A stretch of 63,363 nt of DNA, counting the filler, from Hyphochytrium catenoides (Eukaryota > Protista > Hyphochytriomycota), in NCBI GenBank assembly GCA_900088475.1. It is 8 parts of 8 records of this genome, joined end to end, with 100 filler letters (N's around TTAATTAATTAA, not from the genome) between each part and the next. Parts side by side here need not be neighbours in the genome. Positions count along the whole stretch, not along the records: positions 13,514 to 34,589 come from FLMG01003817.1; 7 more parts are not named here. The stretch is one strand, 5' to 3'. The position numbers and the translations under genes are program-made. Positions 13,970 through 34,589 of the stretch are shown piece by piece. The first letter of the stretch is position 1; each line of letters starts with the position of its first letter. The notes beneath the pieces were generated by a model, which had not been told where the DNA came from, ran no database searches, and saw only the letters and a list, made by a program, of their open reading frames with translations.

Positions 13970-15686
13970 TCAGGAATTATTCTCTGCACTCTTCACCAGA
14001 CTGTCCACAATTGCATTGAATGGGCCTACACCTCTGCTGTGAGGGTACTTCTCAACGAAAGGCTCGCCTTCCTCGCAGGCCTTCAATAGATAAGGATCCA
14101 AAGGAAGCCGACCCAAAAATGGTACCCCGTACGTCTTCGCCATTCCCTGAGGCCCGCTGCCGAAGGCGGGGAAGACCTCAGTAGATACTGAGTAATCCAA
14201 TAGATGAGGCGCATGTGCCTTGAGAACCTCTTTCACCTTGGGAGCAGATTGACAGAGAAAGATGAGAAGATTCACAAGATGACATGGACAAACGAACATG
14301 ACGTAGAGGAAACCAAAACCCCGCGATTAGGGTGCCAGGCGGGACTGTGCGGGAGTTGTTGCCCTTCCAGCCCTTACCACTCAAAGATAGTGAAGATGTA
14401 GGTCGAGAAATTAGCCATTGAGGAATAATCAGTCTTACCTCTTCGGTTGCCTCTTGGCCATCTGGTCTGAGAAAAGACAAGCTGCTGACGGGTGCTTGAT
14501 ACCCGCTCATATTCTCAACTATTCCAAGCACGGGAATCTTGGTCTTTTTGCAGAAGTTGATCTCCTTCCGCACATCCATCATGGCCACCTCCTGCGGAGT
14601 GGTTACAATGACCGCGCCGTCTACGCCAGCCTGTTTTAGGTACTGAAAGGGAAGCATGTCAAACACATAGTCGAATACTGGCCATCCGACACCACCTTCC
14701 TTCTTGTCATCCCAACTTCAGTGACTAGGACCATTCTTCTAAGGTGATGTCCGATCACTGGACCCGAGTCTCTCGTAACGCTCTTCGTGAGGACTATCTC
14801 CATTCCTAGGCTAAGCTAATCTCCGTCGTATGACGCACTTCAACTCACCTGCACAATAGAGATATGCTCATCCGAAGTGCCTGGAGGGGTGTCAATGATA
14901 AGATAGTCTAGGTCCTCCCAGAGGACATCCGTTAGAAATTGTTTGATCAGGCCATTCTTCCTGGGGCCCCGCCAAATTATGGCATCATCCTCTTTTGGAA
15001 GCATAAAGCCAATTGACATCACCTGTACCAAAGGGTAAGTAGCTGACATGAAGCTTGGTACAGCGCAGAAGTGCTTACCGCGAGGTTATCTTCAACATAG
15101 ACGGGTGACCATCCCGCAGCACTCTGATGAACTTCATGGCCGACTAAGCCCAACATACGCGGCACACTCGGACCGCATATGTCAACGTCGAGGATGCCAA
15201 CCTACCCATGGGTCAAATGGGTATGAATATCAGCTACCGCATGGGTAGAGTATGACTCTCACGACCCAATTAGCGCCATACCTGTTTGCCCCTGGCTGCC
15301 AAGGTCCATGCCAATTGACAGGCAAAGCTACTCTTTCCAACGCCTCCTTTGCCTGAAAGCACCAAGATCTTATGTTTCACTGACTTCAGGTGCATCTGGA
15401 CTTCTGCTACAGCTAATGTGGGTCCAAAGAGATGATGTTATTGTCAATGTTGGACATAGGGAACTGACATCCTGTACCTGGATCAGGCTTCTTAGCCTCC
15501 CCTGAAGCGCATATTTTTTGGTTAGGACAACCAGCACAGCCAGCAGCTTTGCCTGCATCGTCTGACTGCACGCCCACACAACCTGCCATTGGATGGTTCG
15601 TAAGTGAGTTATACAATCATGACAAGAGTCCAGAAGCCAAGATTACCCTGGTTGGCGTTTTCTGGAACCATTGTTGAATCTGCCAT
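13970..15686 (-). CDS. NBP35: Cytosolic Fe-S cluster assembly factor NBP35/NUBP1 (Mrp/NBP35 P-loop ATPase)
   Basis: N-terminal Cys motif [24 protein letters not shown], deviant Walker [71 protein letters not shown] and [11 protein letters not shown]. Confidence 0.93.
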
Positions 15687-26185: not shown

Positions 26186-28775
26186 CGTGGCGACTATAAC
26201 TCGACTTGGCTTTTAGGAGACTATGCCTATTGTTCCTATGCACTATGATAAATGGAACTTGGAACTTTGGTTCTGAGCTCAAACCTGGATGCTGCTAGCC
26301 CAGAAGAGCTTCCTTTGGTACTATGCTTGCCCGGCAAGGAGGGAAAGTGCAAATGGAGAGCTGCTAACCATGTAGAACGTGTTGCTGCTCGCTGCCCTCT
26401 GGCGCTCACCCACCGGTGCGTAAGACTCCAAGCTGCTGCCGGCTGTCACTTCTTCAACCTCTTGGGTTTGCCGCTTCTGTGGGGAGGGAGATGCGCACGA
26501 CCAGAACACAGAGAGACGAAAGACAGCTTCTAGAAGCGTTACCGGCACTTCCTTTGTAAGGCTGATGCCTGATGTGCTGACGTGTTGACTATGGAGCGGC
26601 CTACAAGTAGGACAGTACAAACGTCGTCGACCGCACTTGTAGTACCGAGCCAAAAGCAGTCCCCGACCTTACTTTCCGTTAGCGGCTTTGTGGAGGCAAG
26701 GTAAAGCCTCCTTTCTGAAGGCAGTGATGATGATGATGATGAGAAGAAATTAGTCTCTCGGTTTTTTTCAGCTAGTATCATTGTTAGAGTATGTTCAGAG
26801 GTTCCGTTTATTGGTATGGAGCTGTGCAGGCTGAGAGGTCTTGGCCCCCGAGCCACCATCTAGCTGCTCCGTCCCCAATGTAGCCTTTATTAGCTTTATG
26901 AGAGAACAGAGATCTGTAGTAATATTTGTCTCCGTTATTATTAGGTACATCATAATGATCATCGTGGCCTCCTCTTCTTCTACTTAAAACTGGCATCGAG
27001 TCTGGTTAATTGATTGGTCCAGTGGCCGGGGCTGCATTTGGCACTAGCCAAAGGCCATTGCGTTACTGTTAAGCCAGAAGGCAATGATGTTATTATGTGA
27101 AAGGGAAGTTGTTTGTGGCAACTGCAGGTGCTAGTCACTTGTGACCGCAATCAGAGCAACACCACCAGCCAGCCGGCACACACTGGCGACGCGGCCTGCT
27201 ACTACCTAGAACCAGAAAACAAAGTAGTCGCTATTAGCACGTTGAAGGGATCATGCACATAGACCCACCNNNNNNNNNNNNGCGCACAGAAGACATGAAT
27301 CAGTACTTCTGGGCGGCCGGTGGAAATCGAAGCTGCCCCGCCCGAAGTCCTTGTTGCAGTCATTGCTGCATGACAACGCTTGCTTATTACTATGAGGTGA
27401 TGATGACCTCATTGAACACTTGGCGTTGGAGCTGCTGCATTCTAGATAGACGCATCTCTGACTTGAAACTTTCACCAGTACCGACACCGAACGACGACCC
27501 GCAAACCGCTGCTGGCTGTTGTTCTCTTTACACCGTCGTGAGATATGATGGCCGCCGACATGATGATAATATTTACCTTTCCCCTTCTCATTTCAACATC
27601 TGTCTCTTTACTTGGTAGTGAGAGAGTTCTAGACGTCTATGTCAGCAGCCTTAGCTGACGGGATCATGAGTTACGTCAGCCTCCTGCTAAACCCGACCCA
27701 TAACGGTCCTCCGCCTGGTCCTTGTCACCTCCTGCCTTGTGAGGCCTGCAGCACAACAAATTATCGTTTCCAAGAATTTCATCGAAGCAACTGAAGGAAC
27801 AATGTCGAAAGGCCAGTCGCAGGACCTCGTCCTTCCGTCATTCACGCAGCCACCAGCAGCAGCAGTCACTGCCTGACAAAGCATTATCAACAGAGCTTCA
27901 TCTTCTCAACAGCAAGAAAAAACCCGAGCAGCAGAAGAAGATCGCTATTTCCTTGAGAGGAAGCCAATGGAATGAGCGAGGAGGTTGAAGAAGACGGGGG
28001 TGGGATACTAAAGCCCTTTACTGTTTGTACAGCTTCAGAAGGGTAAGAAATTTCGGGGTGATGTTTCTGTTCAAGCTCTATTTTCTACCAACAACTATGT
28101 TTAGTATCGGTATGCATCTATTTTATATATCACTCACTATAAGGTAGAGATATGAATGATACTGTGGCCTAGTTGCCTTAATTGTCTCACTTGGCAGTAA
28201 CCTTCGTGCGACCTTCCCACCACCGCAGAGGAAGTCAGATAGAGTACCAGTAGTAGCTGAGCAATCAGCCCGCAAAAGGACAGGGAAAGATCACGAGGAA
28301 GCTCCTGAATGAGCTGTTAAAGTCCTTCCCTTCGATGATGAGAACTACTAGTTCTACCACTCGCTAACCTTGATGATGGGCCAACCGGCTCTTGTTGCCC
28401 TGTCTCACTGGCTCTGTGGAGCTAGCTCCTCACGTCAGTTTAGAGCTGGGTGGCAGGAGGAGCTTCAAGATAAGAGAGAGGGCCTTTCGACAAACCAAGA
28501 AAGGCTTTTGCCCTCCGCAAGAGATGATGTTTCGATGGAAGGCTATTCAGGTAAACCAGCGCCCATCTGCATCTAATTAGTGCTGCGTAAGCAGAAGATC
28601 GGCCTGCTGCTGCTACCTTTATGCCTGTCCGTATACTCTTCTCAAGCTGATAGACACCAATCCGAAAACTCCTGGCGTGGTGTGTATCCATCTCTTTCTC
28701 CGGCCAGCTCCAAGGCTCATTTTGCTTTATGCAATCCAGCCCCTATCACTCCAACGTAACTTTTCCGTCAACGAA

Positions 28776-30006
28776 ATGAAGGGCCGCATCGTCTTCCCTC
28801 TCCTCTTGACCCTACTTGGTGGATCAACTCTCGCCGTGAGGTCCCAGACATGCGAGTCTGGTGGCCATGGTCCTGCGACAAGTGGCCTATGCACTGCTGA
28901 TTCTGCTACTCTCAGCACTGGGACCTACTGGAGGCCCTCTCGCGAGGAGACTACCGGTGGGTTAGGTGGTCTATACGCAATCTCTTCTCTCCTAGTTTAT
29001 TCTCCTGTATCTGTTTCCAGTATGCTCCCGCTTTCTCTACCTACCTGTCAACCTTTCAACAGCCCGCTGACATCACCGTGGAACGTTTGGCCGTGTGTTG
29101 TCGTTGCGCCGCCCTTGTTTCTTCGACGTTTCTCGCGCTGTTTCCGCCTGAGCTCCTCGAAGTCTCTATCATCTGTTGCCTCATTAACGTTGAAAGTGTG
29201 CAACTTACCGTACCTCAATCTTACAGGAGACTCTACGTCAGACAAGCCCTATAAACGCTCTCCGTGTCCAGCTCTGAACGCTTTGGCAAACCATGGCATC
29301 TTGCCTCGTTCTGGCGCTGGACTGACCATATCGATGGTGGCTGACAAGCTTCTAGAGGCATACAATCTGGACTGGAAAATAGGGGCAGGTCTGGCATTGG
29401 TGTCAAAGGTGAGGCCGCTATCCCACCCTTCAACTCCGGATAACTCCACCGTCGAACTCAATTAAGGTCTCCTGCTTCCCTCATTTCGATCCGCCTCTGA
29501 TCATCTTGTTGGCATTATTGTTCATCTCGTAGGTTTGGCTGTACATCCCTCCTTGGAAGACCTTTACTCTCGCGGATCTAGGAAATCATAATGTTATTGA
29601 GCACGACGCCTCTCTTTTTCACTACGATGCCTATTTCAAGCACGACCCCAGCGAGGTTGACAAGGATGCAGTGGAGCAGCTCATAAGCCTATCGAAGGAT
29701 GGGAAGATAGTGGACATTGAGGACCTCATACGGTTTAGAGAGATGCGGACGAAGGCCAGCGTCGATAACAACCCAGACTTTAGGATGGGCGTTCTCCAGA
29801 AAAGGATTTTAGCAGGAGAGTCAGCTCTTCTGCTCACTCTGTTGGGCAGAAACGAAAGCATTAGCGTAGAGCACCTGAAGAGCTTTGTCTTGGAAGAAAA
29901 GATACCTGGGGATTATAAGAGACCGAATGAGGTCTATACCGTCTCTGACATGAAGCCCACGCAGTATCGTGTCCTACATGAGGATAAGGTCCTGGCTGGC
30001 GTCTAA
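28776..30006 (+). CDS. Secreted heme-thiolate peroxidase / unspecific peroxygenase (chloroperoxidase family), 3 exons
   Basis: Signal peptide MKGRIVFPLLLTLLGGSTLA; proximal-thiolate motif RSPCPALNALANHGILPR (PCP at 29262-29270); HNVIEHDASL (EHD at 29599-29607); putative catalytic Glu in LAGESALLL; C-terminal EEKIPGDY. Confidence 0.9.
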
Positions 30007-30438: not shown

Positions 30439-32500
30439 CTATAGCGCGTTTGCTGCTAGACTTGAGAGGCCTTCTTTCACACTGAGTGTAGCTGCGTCAG
30501 ATGGCGTACCGACTTCCTCTCCTCCTTTTAGTGCCTCCTTGAGTGTGCTCGTTGCTTCATCCTCCTTTCCTTGACGGCTGAGGAGTCTCCCCAGATTCTG
30601 GAGATCCATAAGATAAACGTCGTTCCTCTCTCCAAAAACCTCTTTTCGCATCGCAACAGCCTCTCGCAGCGCCTGTTCCGCTTCTTCCAGGTTGTCTCTC
30701 CGCTGAAGGAAGGCAGCATAGCTCTCTAGCACTATCATATACACTGGGTGCTTCTGCCCAGGCTCTCGTTTCACTAGTTCTAAGGTCTCTTTGTACATCA
30801 AACCTGCTTCATCCATAAGTCCAAGCGGTTCTAGGGCCTCTACTAGCCTTAGAGCCGTGTTAGCAACCATCGTGTTGTTCCCTGTTGCTCTCTGCGCACT
30901 CAGAACTGCGCGGTACTGATTCGCCGCTTCCTCAAACCTTTGCTGTCTCAAGAGGACGTTCGCCAGGCTGAGAGTGCTCTCTGCTGCTTGAAAGCTGTGG
31001 TCTCCGCTTATACGCTTATGATGTGCCAAAATATCACGATAGGTTTGTTCCGCTGCATCTAAGCGACCTGAAACCTCCAAGCACAGGGCCAATGCGATCT
31101 TGGCCCTCACCGTGTCACTGTGATCGGCTCCCAGCACCTCTGAACAATCCATGACCCCTTGCTCTAGAAGAGGCAATGCCTCCTGCTGCTCGTTGAAGCT
31201 AACCAGAGCCTCTGCCAGAGTGATGGTAGAGGATATCGTAGACGGATCGCGGGCTCCTAGGGCCGCAAGGCACCTCTCTCTCACTGTTCTGAGGAGGTTC
31301 AACGCCTCCCTGTCATCCATCTTAAGATGGACTAGTGCCAATCTGGTCATAGATTTGAGCGTGTTCGCGTGGTCATCTCCAAACACCCGTTCGTTACTCT
31401 GCCTCCCTGCCTCTCTTAGCGCCAGCAGTTGCGGGAACATGCCCAACTCCTCGTACAGGACATCCAGCACTCCGTCACGTTCTGGCAAGTTGCAAGCCTC
31501 TAGAAAGCCGACCATCTGTTCCAGAACCTCTGAGGATCTATCATCACTTGAAATAAGCTCTAGGAGCTTGGTATCTGTCTTGATTTCACGATCGCGAGCC
31601 CATTTATAGGAACCGTAGCCCTTGTCCCGCTTATGATGATAAAAGTCATCGATGTGAATCTGAATCTCACAGATGTGCCCACTGACTGCTATGTTAACCT
31701 TTATGTCACGGTAACCACCAGAGGGCAGACTAGAACCATTACTTCCAGTCAGCAGGTGAGTCTTGACTCTGGCGACTGCGTACGGTTGAGCTTCACAAAG
31801 GGAGCGAATGCTAGCGATCGCTCTCATAGCAGGACGGAGACTGGTGAACACTAAGGAAGCTCTCGCGAAGTCCAGCACACGCGACACATCTCCCCCATAT
31901 TTCCTGGCAGCCTTCTGCTCTGCACTTTGGGCCGTCTTAAGTGGTGCCACATATGCCACGATAAGCTCGTTTGGCTTGAGAGATAGAACAGTGAAGGAAA
32001 TGGAGTGTGAGCGGGCAGAGCTCCCTTGGGGAAAATGAATACTAACAGGATTGAAGGAAGCTGCTTCGAACAAAGAAGAAAGAGATGACAGAGCGTCATA
32101 CCTGAGAGGGAGCAAATTCATCCTTGATCTCATTAATGATCGCCCCTAAAGAACCTTGGATCTCCTGTGCTTTCTCTAGCAATGCCGGCAGGGTGGTGCC
32201 CTCAGGGCTTTGTTTTGGTGACTGTTCATACTGTTGAACGAGTCCCTGTAGCTCCCTCAAAGGCTCTGCCATTTCCTCTGAGCTATGGAGTTCCTGGTAC
32301 GTCTCATCGTAGTGGCGATGAGCTTCAAGAACTTCCTCTGTCTGCAGGAGGATGAGCAAACTGCGTAGAACTCTCTCGTGAATCTCAGTCTTGGCACTTT
32401 CTTTGAAGTCCAAGCTCTGGACTAGCTCCAACAACTTCAAGCCTGTTTCTGTCACCGCTGGGACAGGAAGGTCTGCACCAACGCTTACAGACCCACCCAT
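30439..32500 (-). CDS. RelA/SpoT-like nucleotidyltransferase domain fused to a TPR array, putatively N-myristoylated; 2 exons
   Basis: Exon 1 is 32500-32102 (MGGSVS...FAPSQ). A phase-0 intron spans ~32101-31976 and exon 2 runs to 30439. Motifs: APLKTAQSAEQK..KYGGDVSRVLDFAR, RVK, GYRDIKVN, HICEIQIH. These are followed by ~42-aa TPRs with GDDHANT / GARDPST / GADHSDT / GQKHPVY turns. Confidence 0.8.
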
Positions 32501-34589
32501 TGCGCTTTAGATACTCTATCTTCCTTGACTAATCCTGATCAACGGACGGAATGATACTGATAATGAGCTTTCAGGCGGTAGCTGTGTCTCCTTTCCTCTT
32601 TTCAGACGCCGCCGACTCCGATCAGGCTCTTTCTTACTGATGGTGTTATGCTTGTGTGCTATATTCCGGCTTCTTTCTCTCGTGCGGCCAAGAATACACT
32701 CTCCGATCTCGCTGAGGCTAAGTTTGTCGTCAATCAATTGGCCTTATTCCTCTCCTGCTGTTGGATGTGGAGAGGGAGAGGGGGAGAGGGAAAGCCGCAG
32801 AAGCTTTTTTTGTTTTCAGGAGGACGTTCTCGACCATTATGCCTCGCATCATTTCTTATTCATTCGTTCCCTTGTGCTGCGTACATAGCGCCCATCCCCT
32901 TACAATGCTGGCTGATGAGACTGTCGAAGGCATAGACGACATCGGCGTTGTTAGGCCTCCAACCCAAGGGGAAAGAGAGAGATACTTGAGAGAGGCAGGA
33001 CAAAGAGAAAAGGGAGTAGCCAACTGAGTACCATGCCGACCATTGCTGTACCTATACAGAGTGGGAAGAAGAAAGGCAGAAAGGGAGAGGAGAGAGAGGA
33101 GAGGAGCTAGAGCTCTACGAGCACAGAGAAGAAAGAAGGAAGAGGGAGGAGGAGTGGCGACGAATGAGGTTGACGCGTTGGTCAGAGAAAGGGCAAGAGC
33201 ATCCGTTACATTCCAACGGGAGCGCAGAGTAGTACGTCCAACAATACCCTATTGTCATATATTATCTATTGCGATGAGAGTAATAATACTGATCTAAAAG
33301 AGGATGGGATGAGAACTCGCTTGGGTCACTTTTTCTCTCTTTCTCTCTTGCTCTCACACTCTCTCTCTTCCACTCTCTCCCCTGTCACTCCTCTCCCTCT
33401 TTGCATCTCTCTTTCCTCACTCGCCTTCTCCTTGCCTCCATCTACCTCATCCTCTGACGCTCAAAACCCCAGTTACACCCGCTCTCTCCTACTTCAACGA
33501 GGTCTTCTAGCAAGCCTCCTAGAAACCTTCGTCCCCTCTTGATAGTTCCCAGCCATGTAGTCCTCACTCCTCCTAGCTCTCAAGCAGCCTGACATCAGCC
33601 TCCTAAACACGAAGAAGGGCCAACCACACGCAGAAGGCCACAAAGTGATGGCAGCCGCATGTAGCTTACGAAGAAGAGAAAGGGCGGTGATTGTGGGTTG
33701 TACGGCCTGCTGAGCCAAACTAGTAGACAGAGAAGAAATATACAAAGAACAGATAATGAATGGTGGGAGTAAGATATGAGCTACTGAGCACCAAACATAG
33801 CACGCCAAAATGGTGAAGTAGTAAAAGGATACGAGCGGCACACGCTAATGGCTAAGCGGCAGAGGACATCAAGACATTGCTGGCCTGGAGGTGCAGTAAT
33901 GAGGATGCGAAATGTAGTTTAAAGGGCATTGCACTCTGTGTTCCTTGCAGTCCTAAGGTAACATGATGATCAAGCTGAAAAGGCAGGAAACGCCTCCTGT
34001 GGAAGGAGGACACTACCCTAGACTTCCCGGACTTTCTCAGCAGAGTCCACGCTTCTTGCATCGCTTGACGGTCCTCATAAAATCTTACCTGCTCAAAGCC
34101 AGACTTCCCTTTCCCCGCGACTAAGTGTTCTCACGGTCCTTGAGCTCCTCGTTAAGCCTCACACTGTGTTTCCTTTCCAGCTCAGGATACCTCTACTTGT
34201 ACCTACGAATTGCATCAGTCACTATCCACTTTGTAAGAAGTCGTCCTCAGCTCATTAGCTCTGGTCCTTCCTCTCCTCTGGCAGCAGCTCCTGTCAGCTT
34301 GCTGTCTGCCTCTCCAAAGCGTCTCCAGTCTCCTTTGTGTGTCTTCCTCATTCTTCTCCTCATCAGTTCGCACAAGTCGTGAGTCATTCTACTAGATAAA
34401 TGATAGACTTTGGCCAGGTCTGTTTGTGCGTGCAGTAGGGTGTACAGATAATCGTTAGCGGCTATCGGCGCGGGCGTTATTGCTTTTTTGCTTTGTCACG
34501 AACAGTGCGCCGAGAGGTCAGAAATAACCTATAGCGAAAGACAGAGGCGGCGAGCAAGGCAGGAGAGAGAGAGAGAGAGAGAGAGAGAG

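Follow-up and report, generated by a model that had tools for sequence, protein, structure and literature searches.

The window analyzed here is a stretch of 63,363 nucleotides from Hyphochytrium catenoides (GenBank assembly GCA_900088475.1), composed of eight parts joined end to end with filler. The gene under study lies on the minus strand of one of them, a 21-kb contig piece (FLMG01003817.1) of about 50% G+C, and its two exons encode a predicted protein of ~644 aa, hereafter the window protein. Profile searches and structure predictions indicate that its N-terminal half is a divergent RelA/SpoT-type (RSH) pyrophosphokinase-type domain of the Tas1/Apk1 toxin type carrying a full catalytic residue set, and that its C-terminal half is a superhelix of tetratricopeptide repeats (TPRs) resembling those of kinesin light chains (KLC) and LGN. 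We propose, with a probability of roughly one half, that the two halves form a one-chain sensor-effector in the cytosol. An original prediction, made from the sequence alone, had described a myristoylated RelA/SpoT-like synthetase fused to TPRs; the sequence features on which it was built (the MGGSVS start, the domain motifs and the TPRs) were all recovered in place. The parts of the protein lie as follows.

31591..31974, minus strand: RSH synthetase-like domain core (exon-2 aa 1-128), delimited by family alignment, PDB profile matches, AlphaFold and Foldseek.
31870..31872, minus strand: Asp codon of LDFAR (D35 of exon 2, D168 of the full-length protein), equivalent of the metal-binding Asp, invariant in an alignment of 116 sequences.
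31666..31668, minus strand: Glu codon of CEIQIH (E103 of exon 2, E236 of the full-length protein), equivalent of the catalytic Glu of EIQIRT, invariant in the same alignment.
31480..31590, minus strand: helical linker between the RSH core and the TPRs (exon-2 aa ~129-165), from the AlphaFold secondary structure, no Pfam match.
30445..31479, minus strand: TPR solenoid (exon-2 aa 166-510), 18 helices, AlphaFold pLDDT mostly >90.

The frame of exon 2 contains the motifs APLKTAQSAEQKAARKYGGDVSRVLDFAR, RVK, GGYRDIKVN and HICEIQIH. A word-based protein search returned 11 relatives with 35-40% identity, all of which share GP.K...A..KA.KKYGGDV..V.DY.R..LV, R.K, GGYRD..N and HICEIQ. When a family profile built from these 11 sequences was run against a 1.84-billion-protein library, it retrieved 3233 representatives at E<=0.001, with 644 at E<=1e-10. 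Five columns are invariant in the 116-sequence domain alignment, namely K13, K21, D35, R38 and E103 in exon-2 numbering (K146, K154, D168, R171 and E236 in the full-length protein), and eleven further columns are nearly invariant, all eleven being kept by the window protein. Across a family of 3233 representatives the domain motifs fall on columns that vary little or not at all, and they are thus not chance resemblances.

The RSH identity of this family emerged from the 116-sequence profile and from a fold search. Searched against the PDB, it matched Tas1 (6OX6) at 1.7e-11, RelP at 1.4e-6, a Streptococcus pneumoniae small alarmone synthetase (SAS) at 7.5e-5 and RelQ at 3e-4, with weaker matches to Rel and RelA and almost none outside RSH synthetases. 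Tas1 was thus ahead of the next PDB match by ~5 orders of magnitude in E-value, and was the sole match obtained with a smaller profile. In the alignment to these structures, the invariant positions coincide with two Lys (that of the RxKS strand and that of the helix after it), the metal-binding Asp and the Glu of EIQ: D168 pairs with the D of KDLAR in Tas1 and with that of DIAGxR in RelP and RelQ, and E236 with the E of EIQ in all three proteins. An AlphaFold model of exon-2 aa 1-170 (mean pLDDT 85.3) displays a core in the order beta1, helix, beta2, helix, beta3-5, helix, and the best 50 Foldseek matches of this model in the PDB were all RSH synthetases (probability 1.00, E-values of 3e-5 to 9e-4), including Rel, RelA, SpoT, RelP, RelQ, Tas1, FaRel2 and an exported Streptomyces enzyme. 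Its neighbours in the ESM Atlas were diatom hypothetical proteins and bacterial RelA_SpoT clusters. The domain is nevertheless too divergent for standard models: the window protein gave no match to Pfam RelA_SpoT (PF04607; gathering score 27 bits) even at E<=10, its relatives reached only 20-24 bits, no NCBIfam model matched the domain, and a single-sequence search of the PDB returned chance matches only. The RelA/SpoT-type synthetase of the original prediction is therefore retained for the fold and the catalytic residues, which family profile, AlphaFold and Foldseek all recover, and not for a match to the PF04607 profile; among solved structures it lies nearest to Tas1/Apk1, an interbacterial toxin that makes (p)ppApp, and not to a stringent-response enzyme.

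In the C-terminal half, the Pfam scan of the window protein detected TPR families only (TPR_12 at 6.6e-37, TPR_10 at 1.9e-21). A 42-aa unit profile placed ~7 TPR_10/TPR_12 units at full-length aa ~313-603 (positions 30565-31437), with capping helices in addition, in line with the earlier count of about seven 42-aa repeats directly after the domain. The best Foldseek matches of the array were the TPR domains of LGN/Pins and of kinesin light chains, a superhelical module whose groove usually holds peptide or protein ligands. The same Pfam scan found no HD, TGS, ACT, NACHT or NB-ARC domain in the window protein and a search for a Walker A/P-loop (GxxxxGK[ST]) found none, as had been anticipated, and the linker region holds no nucleotide-binding oligomerization domain (NOD) module because it is too short. 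A complex prediction between the TPR array and the RSH core gave a score of 0.01, which counts neither for nor against docking.

The same order of RSH-like domain and TPRs was observed in Ectocarpus (brown algae) and in metagenomic proteins. Other members of the family were found in the diatoms Cylindrotheca, Entomoneis and Conticribra (the Cylindrotheca entry being named automatically in UniRef as a RelA/SpoT domain-containing protein), in the cryptophyte Guillardia, in the choanoflagellate Acanthoeca and in the diplonemid Namystynia. A transcript of Namystynia karyoxenos (P0103) encodes an RSH-like domain at aa 333-502 followed by leucine-rich repeats (LRRs) at aa 560-715 in place of TPRs, which constitutes a second effector-plus-repeat architecture without a NOD. 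Very long relatives (P0071, P0127, P0095 and P0142) combine the domain with eCIS_core, calpain protease, Phage_Mu_F or Zeta_toxin. As eCIS_core, Phage_Mu_F and Zeta_toxin are typical of bacterial toxin-delivery proteins, these relatives resemble multi-domain proteins of bacteria that serve as toxins or cargo; such partners fit with kinship to Tas1, and it is the domain partners of some relatives that suggest a bacterial source of the RSH-like domain. Two further arrangements were noted among the relatives. One protein (P0097) carries the RSH-like domain at aa 285-433 and a C-terminal ubiquitin domain at aa 929-988, and a group of Guillardia-type proteins of 900-1700 aa (P0067, P0068, P0072 and ~25 similar) contains two matched domain stretches, the stronger at the extreme C-terminus, the remainder of each having no Pfam match.

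Paralogues, whose number the original prediction had left to be counted, were sought in the whole assembly (61.0 Mb, 4759 records). The RSH-like domain was found at ~10 loci, four of which are direct fusions of the RSH-like domain to TPR_10/12 repeats (the window gene, C3807, C3972 and C1106). Three paralogues have long C-terminal regions without Pfam match, and three loci, possibly pseudogenes, are fragmentary or contain interrupting stops or introns. The paralogues lie on the following contigs.

C3807, C3972, C1183, C1414, C1721 and C1106 (L022-L027).
C2423, C3618 and C3544 (L028-L030).

The organism is described as a free-living hyphochytrid (PMC5795050). Searching its genome for PF04607, for HD_4 (PF13328) and for chlorophyll a/b-binding (Chloroa_b-bind) light-harvesting proteins yielded no candidate in any of the three cases. 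It is thus probably non-photosynthetic, since chlorophyll a/b-binding candidates are lacking, and a diatom origin of the genome was rejected on the same ground. As far as a profile search can see, the genome is probably without canonical (plastid-type) RSH and without SpoT/Mesh1-type hydrolases. With no canonical RSH detected, the family described here is the only RSH-type enzyme seen in this genome.

We therefore consider how such a protein might operate. The RSH domain would move the beta-gamma pyrophosphate of ATP onto the 3'-OH of an acceptor nucleotide, an adenine nucleotide being favoured because of the affinity to Tas1, which would give (p)ppApp, and a guanine nucleotide being possible. 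The TPR array would keep the enzyme off, or localize it, until a protein ligand binds, and the output would be either an ATP-draining burst leading to growth arrest or cell death, following an abortive-infection logic, or a nucleotide signal. Such a protein would be a one-chain sensor-effector lacking the NOD switch of NLRs. The product, the gating by the TPRs, the membrane tether and the immune role are all putative. Precedents for such control are CapRel, in which a phage capsid protein sets the RSH toxin free (PMC9712102), and fungal NLRs whose effector is a RelA_SpoT domain (PMC4986451, PMC12258605); that fusions to repeats recur, with TPRs in this gene and in brown algae and LRRs in the diplonemid, supports a receptor-like logic. 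A wider picture, which we put forward tentatively and which may well prove wrong, is that protists of several supergroups (stramenopiles, cryptophytes, diplonemids, choanoflagellates) carry NOD-less, TPR- or LRR-gated Tas1-like pyrophosphokinases derived from bacterial polymorphic-toxin domains and use them for innate immunity, each receptor being a single chain. The binding of a protein from a virus or parasite to the repeats would trigger (p)ppApp-type synthesis, ATP collapse and abortive infection, and in the genome studied here these proteins would be the sole RSH-type enzymes.

Several observations weigh against a sensor-effector of this kind. In a quick tree with weak deep support the paralogues had branch lengths of ~0.8-1.3, such long branches indicating an old family and not a recent expansion. 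Repeat shuffling, which the original prediction had raised, left no recent trace: Tandem Repeats Finder detected neither a tandem repeat nor homogenization in the TPR-coding DNA. Deep divergence of paralogues together with a lack of repeat homogenization is unlike fast-evolving immune receptor families. The domain also matched no PADLOC model. Its product is unpredictable from homology, since the acceptor varies among Tas1 homologues, which yield (p)ppApp or (p)ppGpp or the two together (PMC12691689), and tRNA is pyrophosphorylated by other toxSAS enzymes. Finally, a potent ATP-draining enzyme without a detectable hydrolase partner would be dangerous to the cell, and this could argue for low-activity signalling.

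Signalling is indeed the alternative that survives best, although we consider it improbable. The protein would be a non-toxic cytosolic SAS making (p)ppGpp or a related second messenger, with the TPRs as a scaffold for localization or partners rather than a sensor of pathogens. Its fold and catalytic residues are the same as those of the housekeeping enzymes RelP and RelQ, the paralogues are old and diverged rather than members of a fast-turnover family, and TPRs of the KLC/LGN type are typically cargo or partner adaptors; a green-algal RSH4 with C-terminal TPRs has also been reported (PMC6881373). What holds us to the sensor-effector is that the nearest solved relative is by a wide margin the toxin Tas1, that relatives are embedded in bacterial toxin-delivery proteins, that the LRR-fused relative suggests a receptor-like logic and that the genome search detected no HD_4 hydrolase that could turn a signal off.

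It is unlikely that the window protein targets translation in the manner of the toxSAS enzymes FaRel2, PhRel2 or CapRel. In CapRel, an RSH toxin with its sensor fused at the C-terminus, release is brought about by a viral protein (PMC9712102), which sets a precedent, and the FaRel2 structure was among the fold matches, at rank 37 of the best 50. Yet neither FaRel2 nor CapRel appeared among the PDB sequence matches of the family profile at E<=10, where Tas1, RelP and RelQ were all present, and no match came from the PADLOC models, whose scope is the known anti-phage systems.

Even less probable is a catalytically inert scaffold, in which the RSH-like domain would have turned into a nucleotide-binding or purely structural module. 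Besides the missing PF04607 match, two substitutions could be read in this way: the Gly-Arg of the canonical GRxKS motif is replaced by Ala-Pro in the window protein, and the His of the family motif GH..Y is replaced by Tyr. However, AP[IL]K and a short D..AR spacing (AP[IL]K...Y.GD...D.AR) are common to the window protein and Tas1, and since Tas1 is an active enzyme with these same traits, the Ala-Pro substitution is no argument for a dead enzyme. The window protein moreover keeps five of the five invariant and eleven of the eleven nearly invariant family positions.

The preferred reading further requires that the two exons belong together, and the gene model was examined accordingly. Its elements are listed below.

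32102..32500, minus strand: exon 1, 133 aa, ATG at 32500, protein start MGGSVSVG.
31975..32101, minus strand: intron of 127 nt, GT..AG, phase 0, with a pyrimidine-rich tract and the acceptor AG at 31976-31975.
30439..31974, minus strand: exon 2, a 511-codon frame.
30439..30441, minus strand: stop codon TAG, read from the sequence.

An in-frame TAA lies 3 codons 5' of the ATG at 32500, and the frame of exon 1 stays open down to 32102, with a stop 1 codon past the GTATGA donor at 32101. All in-frame GT/AG combinations were enumerated and their products scored with a family profile spanning the junction. The top two combinations were 32101/31975 (4.5e-11) and 32101/31966 (3e-11), the alternative acceptor AG at 31966 giving a protein 3 aa shorter with a near-equal profile score. 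We also built an upstream-only profile from the 75 residues that precede the domain core in 130 relatives, leaving out the window protein. It matched the exon-1 frame at aa 53-125 with an E-value of 3.6e-6, the match ending exactly at the core boundary, whereas the other five frames gave E>0.6. Weaker collinear matches of exon 1 were obtained with a second family profile (A2) and with the intron-less paralogue on C1183. Because the upstream-only profile matches its frame, exon 1 appears to be coding and to belong to the same gene and the same domain as exon 2, and the joining of the two exons proposed earlier is upheld at the level of predicted sequence. Exon 1 had been described as carrying a helical linker, a description that has to be given up for at least aa ~53-125: in the RSH-like domain family this stretch is a conserved set of helices at the N-terminal side of the domain. 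That the gene is an artefact, be it a pseudogene, a contaminant or a wrongly joined model, is barely credible: although the window protein is not in the searched protein collection, its long open frames, canonical intron, homology on both sides of that intron, eukaryotic neighbours on the contig and several paralogues in the genome all speak for a real gene. We conclude that the locus is a genuine gene in the nucleus of a heterotrophic stramenopile.

The genes adjoining the locus on the same contig are ordinary eukaryotic genes. The convergent neighbour, at 28677-30006 on the plus strand and mainly at 29250-29928, belongs to the heme-thiolate peroxidase/chloroperoxidase family (Pfam Peroxidase_2), has at least 2 exons and carries the motif PCPALNALANHG; Peroxidase_2 occurs at eight places in the genome by the same search method as was used for the RSH families, this neighbour being one of them. 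Further along, an open frame at 14178-14666 on the minus strand begins with sequence characteristic of iron-sulfur cluster assembly ATPases of the Nbp35/Cfd1 (Mrp/ParA) type and is probably a single exon of an ordinary housekeeping gene. CT-rich simple sequence (SLSLSL in translation) is frequent between genes, being present at window positions 32500-34589, in several short ORFs and on the paralogue contigs.

At the N-terminus of the window protein, we found no hydrophobic signal peptide. The absence of a visible plastid-targeting peptide noted earlier extends to any recognisable targeting signal, and for this reason the protein is probably cytosolic. The putative myristoylation fared less well. 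MGGSVSV does fit the N-myristoylation pattern M-G-{EDRKHPFYW}-x-x-[STAGCN]-{P}, which is a loose one, but the trait is not common to the family: among 141 relatives, 10 start with MG and 3 fit the full pattern, and no MG start was found in the paralogue frames examined.

By the current view, alarmone synthetases belong to bacteria and plastids, and their toxic relatives Tas1, FaRel and CapRel serve bacteria as weapons and anti-phage effectors. Protist nuclear genomes, as the present analysis shows, widely carry a Tas1-like domain with an intact active site, which has been joined time and again to ligand-binding repeats. Should these proteins be active, the chemistry of (p)ppApp/(p)ppGpp would reach the eukaryotic cytosol, and they would represent a simple immune-like sensor-effector without a NOD switch as well as a further instance in which eukaryotes have put a bacterial conflict domain to new use. 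ATP-draining enzymes that can be switched on at will could serve as tools, too. The literature searched, the coverage of which was incomplete, contained fungal RelA_SpoT NLRs, plastid RSH enzymes and bacterial toxSAS; Tas1-like RSH domains of protists, or RSH-TPR and RSH-LRR proteins lacking a NOD, were not described in it, in agreement with the earlier suggestion of a possibly uncharacterised system.

Among known systems, the closest is Tas1/Apk1 (PDB 6OX6), the (p)ppApp synthetase that Pseudomonas aeruginosa uses as a type VI secretion effector and the best match among solved structures. The window protein shares with it the AP[IL]K, Y.GD and D.AR motifs with their spacing, the GY and E.Q motifs and the fold. 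Tas1 is, however, a toxin that bacteria secrete, with a PAAR domain for delivery and an immunity protein of its own, whereas the window protein is eukaryotic, is encoded by an intron-containing gene and bears a C-terminal TPR array; the Pfam scan detected no delivery domain in it (PAAR, LXG, signal peptide, eCIS, MuF), and an operon-style immunity gene such as accompanies Tas1-type toxins is not a criterion applicable to a eukaryotic locus. With RelQ/SAS1 and RelP/SAS2 (PDB 5DED, 6FGK and 6EWZ) it shares the single-domain RSH synthetase fold and the aligned catalytic Lys, Lys, Asp and Glu. It differs from them in its low identity (~15-17%), a Pfam RelA_SpoT score below threshold, the Ala-Pro in place of the Gly-Arg of GRxK, the shifted Arg (D..R instead of D....R) and the additional TPRs.

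The plant and algal plastid RSH proteins (RSH1-4, CRSH) are likewise eukaryotic members of the RSH superfamily, some of them with TPRs, as in the green-algal RSH4 (PMC6881373). They are long proteins with HD and synthetase domains, plastid targeting and a Pfam match, and classification of the window protein as a long or plastid RSH was rejected for lack of an HD, TGS or ACT domain and of a targeting signal. CapRel(SJ46), a fused toxin-antitoxin whose RSH toxin is released by a phage capsid protein (PMC9712102), is comparable in logic only, by virtue of an N-terminal toxic RSH domain and a C-terminal domain of the same chain that senses, in the case of CapRel, a viral protein. CapRel is bacterial, its C-terminal domain is not made of TPRs, its target is tRNA, and there is no match at the sequence level.

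Fungal NLRs with an N-terminal RelA_SpoT domain, arranged as RelA_SpoT-NACHT-TPR/WD40 (PMC4986451, PMC12258605), resemble the window protein in being eukaryotic, in their presumably cytosolic RSH-type N-terminal effector and in their C-terminal repeats of TPR_10/12 type. Membership of the window protein in the NLR/STAND class was rejected, as there is no NOD: it has neither NACHT or NB-ARC nor a P-loop, and the stretch from the RSH core to the TPRs measures only ~40 residues. The fungal domains are, besides, annotated by a match to PF04607, which the window domain lacks. The window protein nonetheless displays one NLR-like trait, an N-terminal effector-type domain combined with C-terminal superstructure-forming repeats. 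The RSH superfamily, the effector-plus-repeat logic and RSH toxins with a fused sensor are thus already known; what is new, within the literature searched, is their eukaryotic, NOD-less and Tas1-like version.

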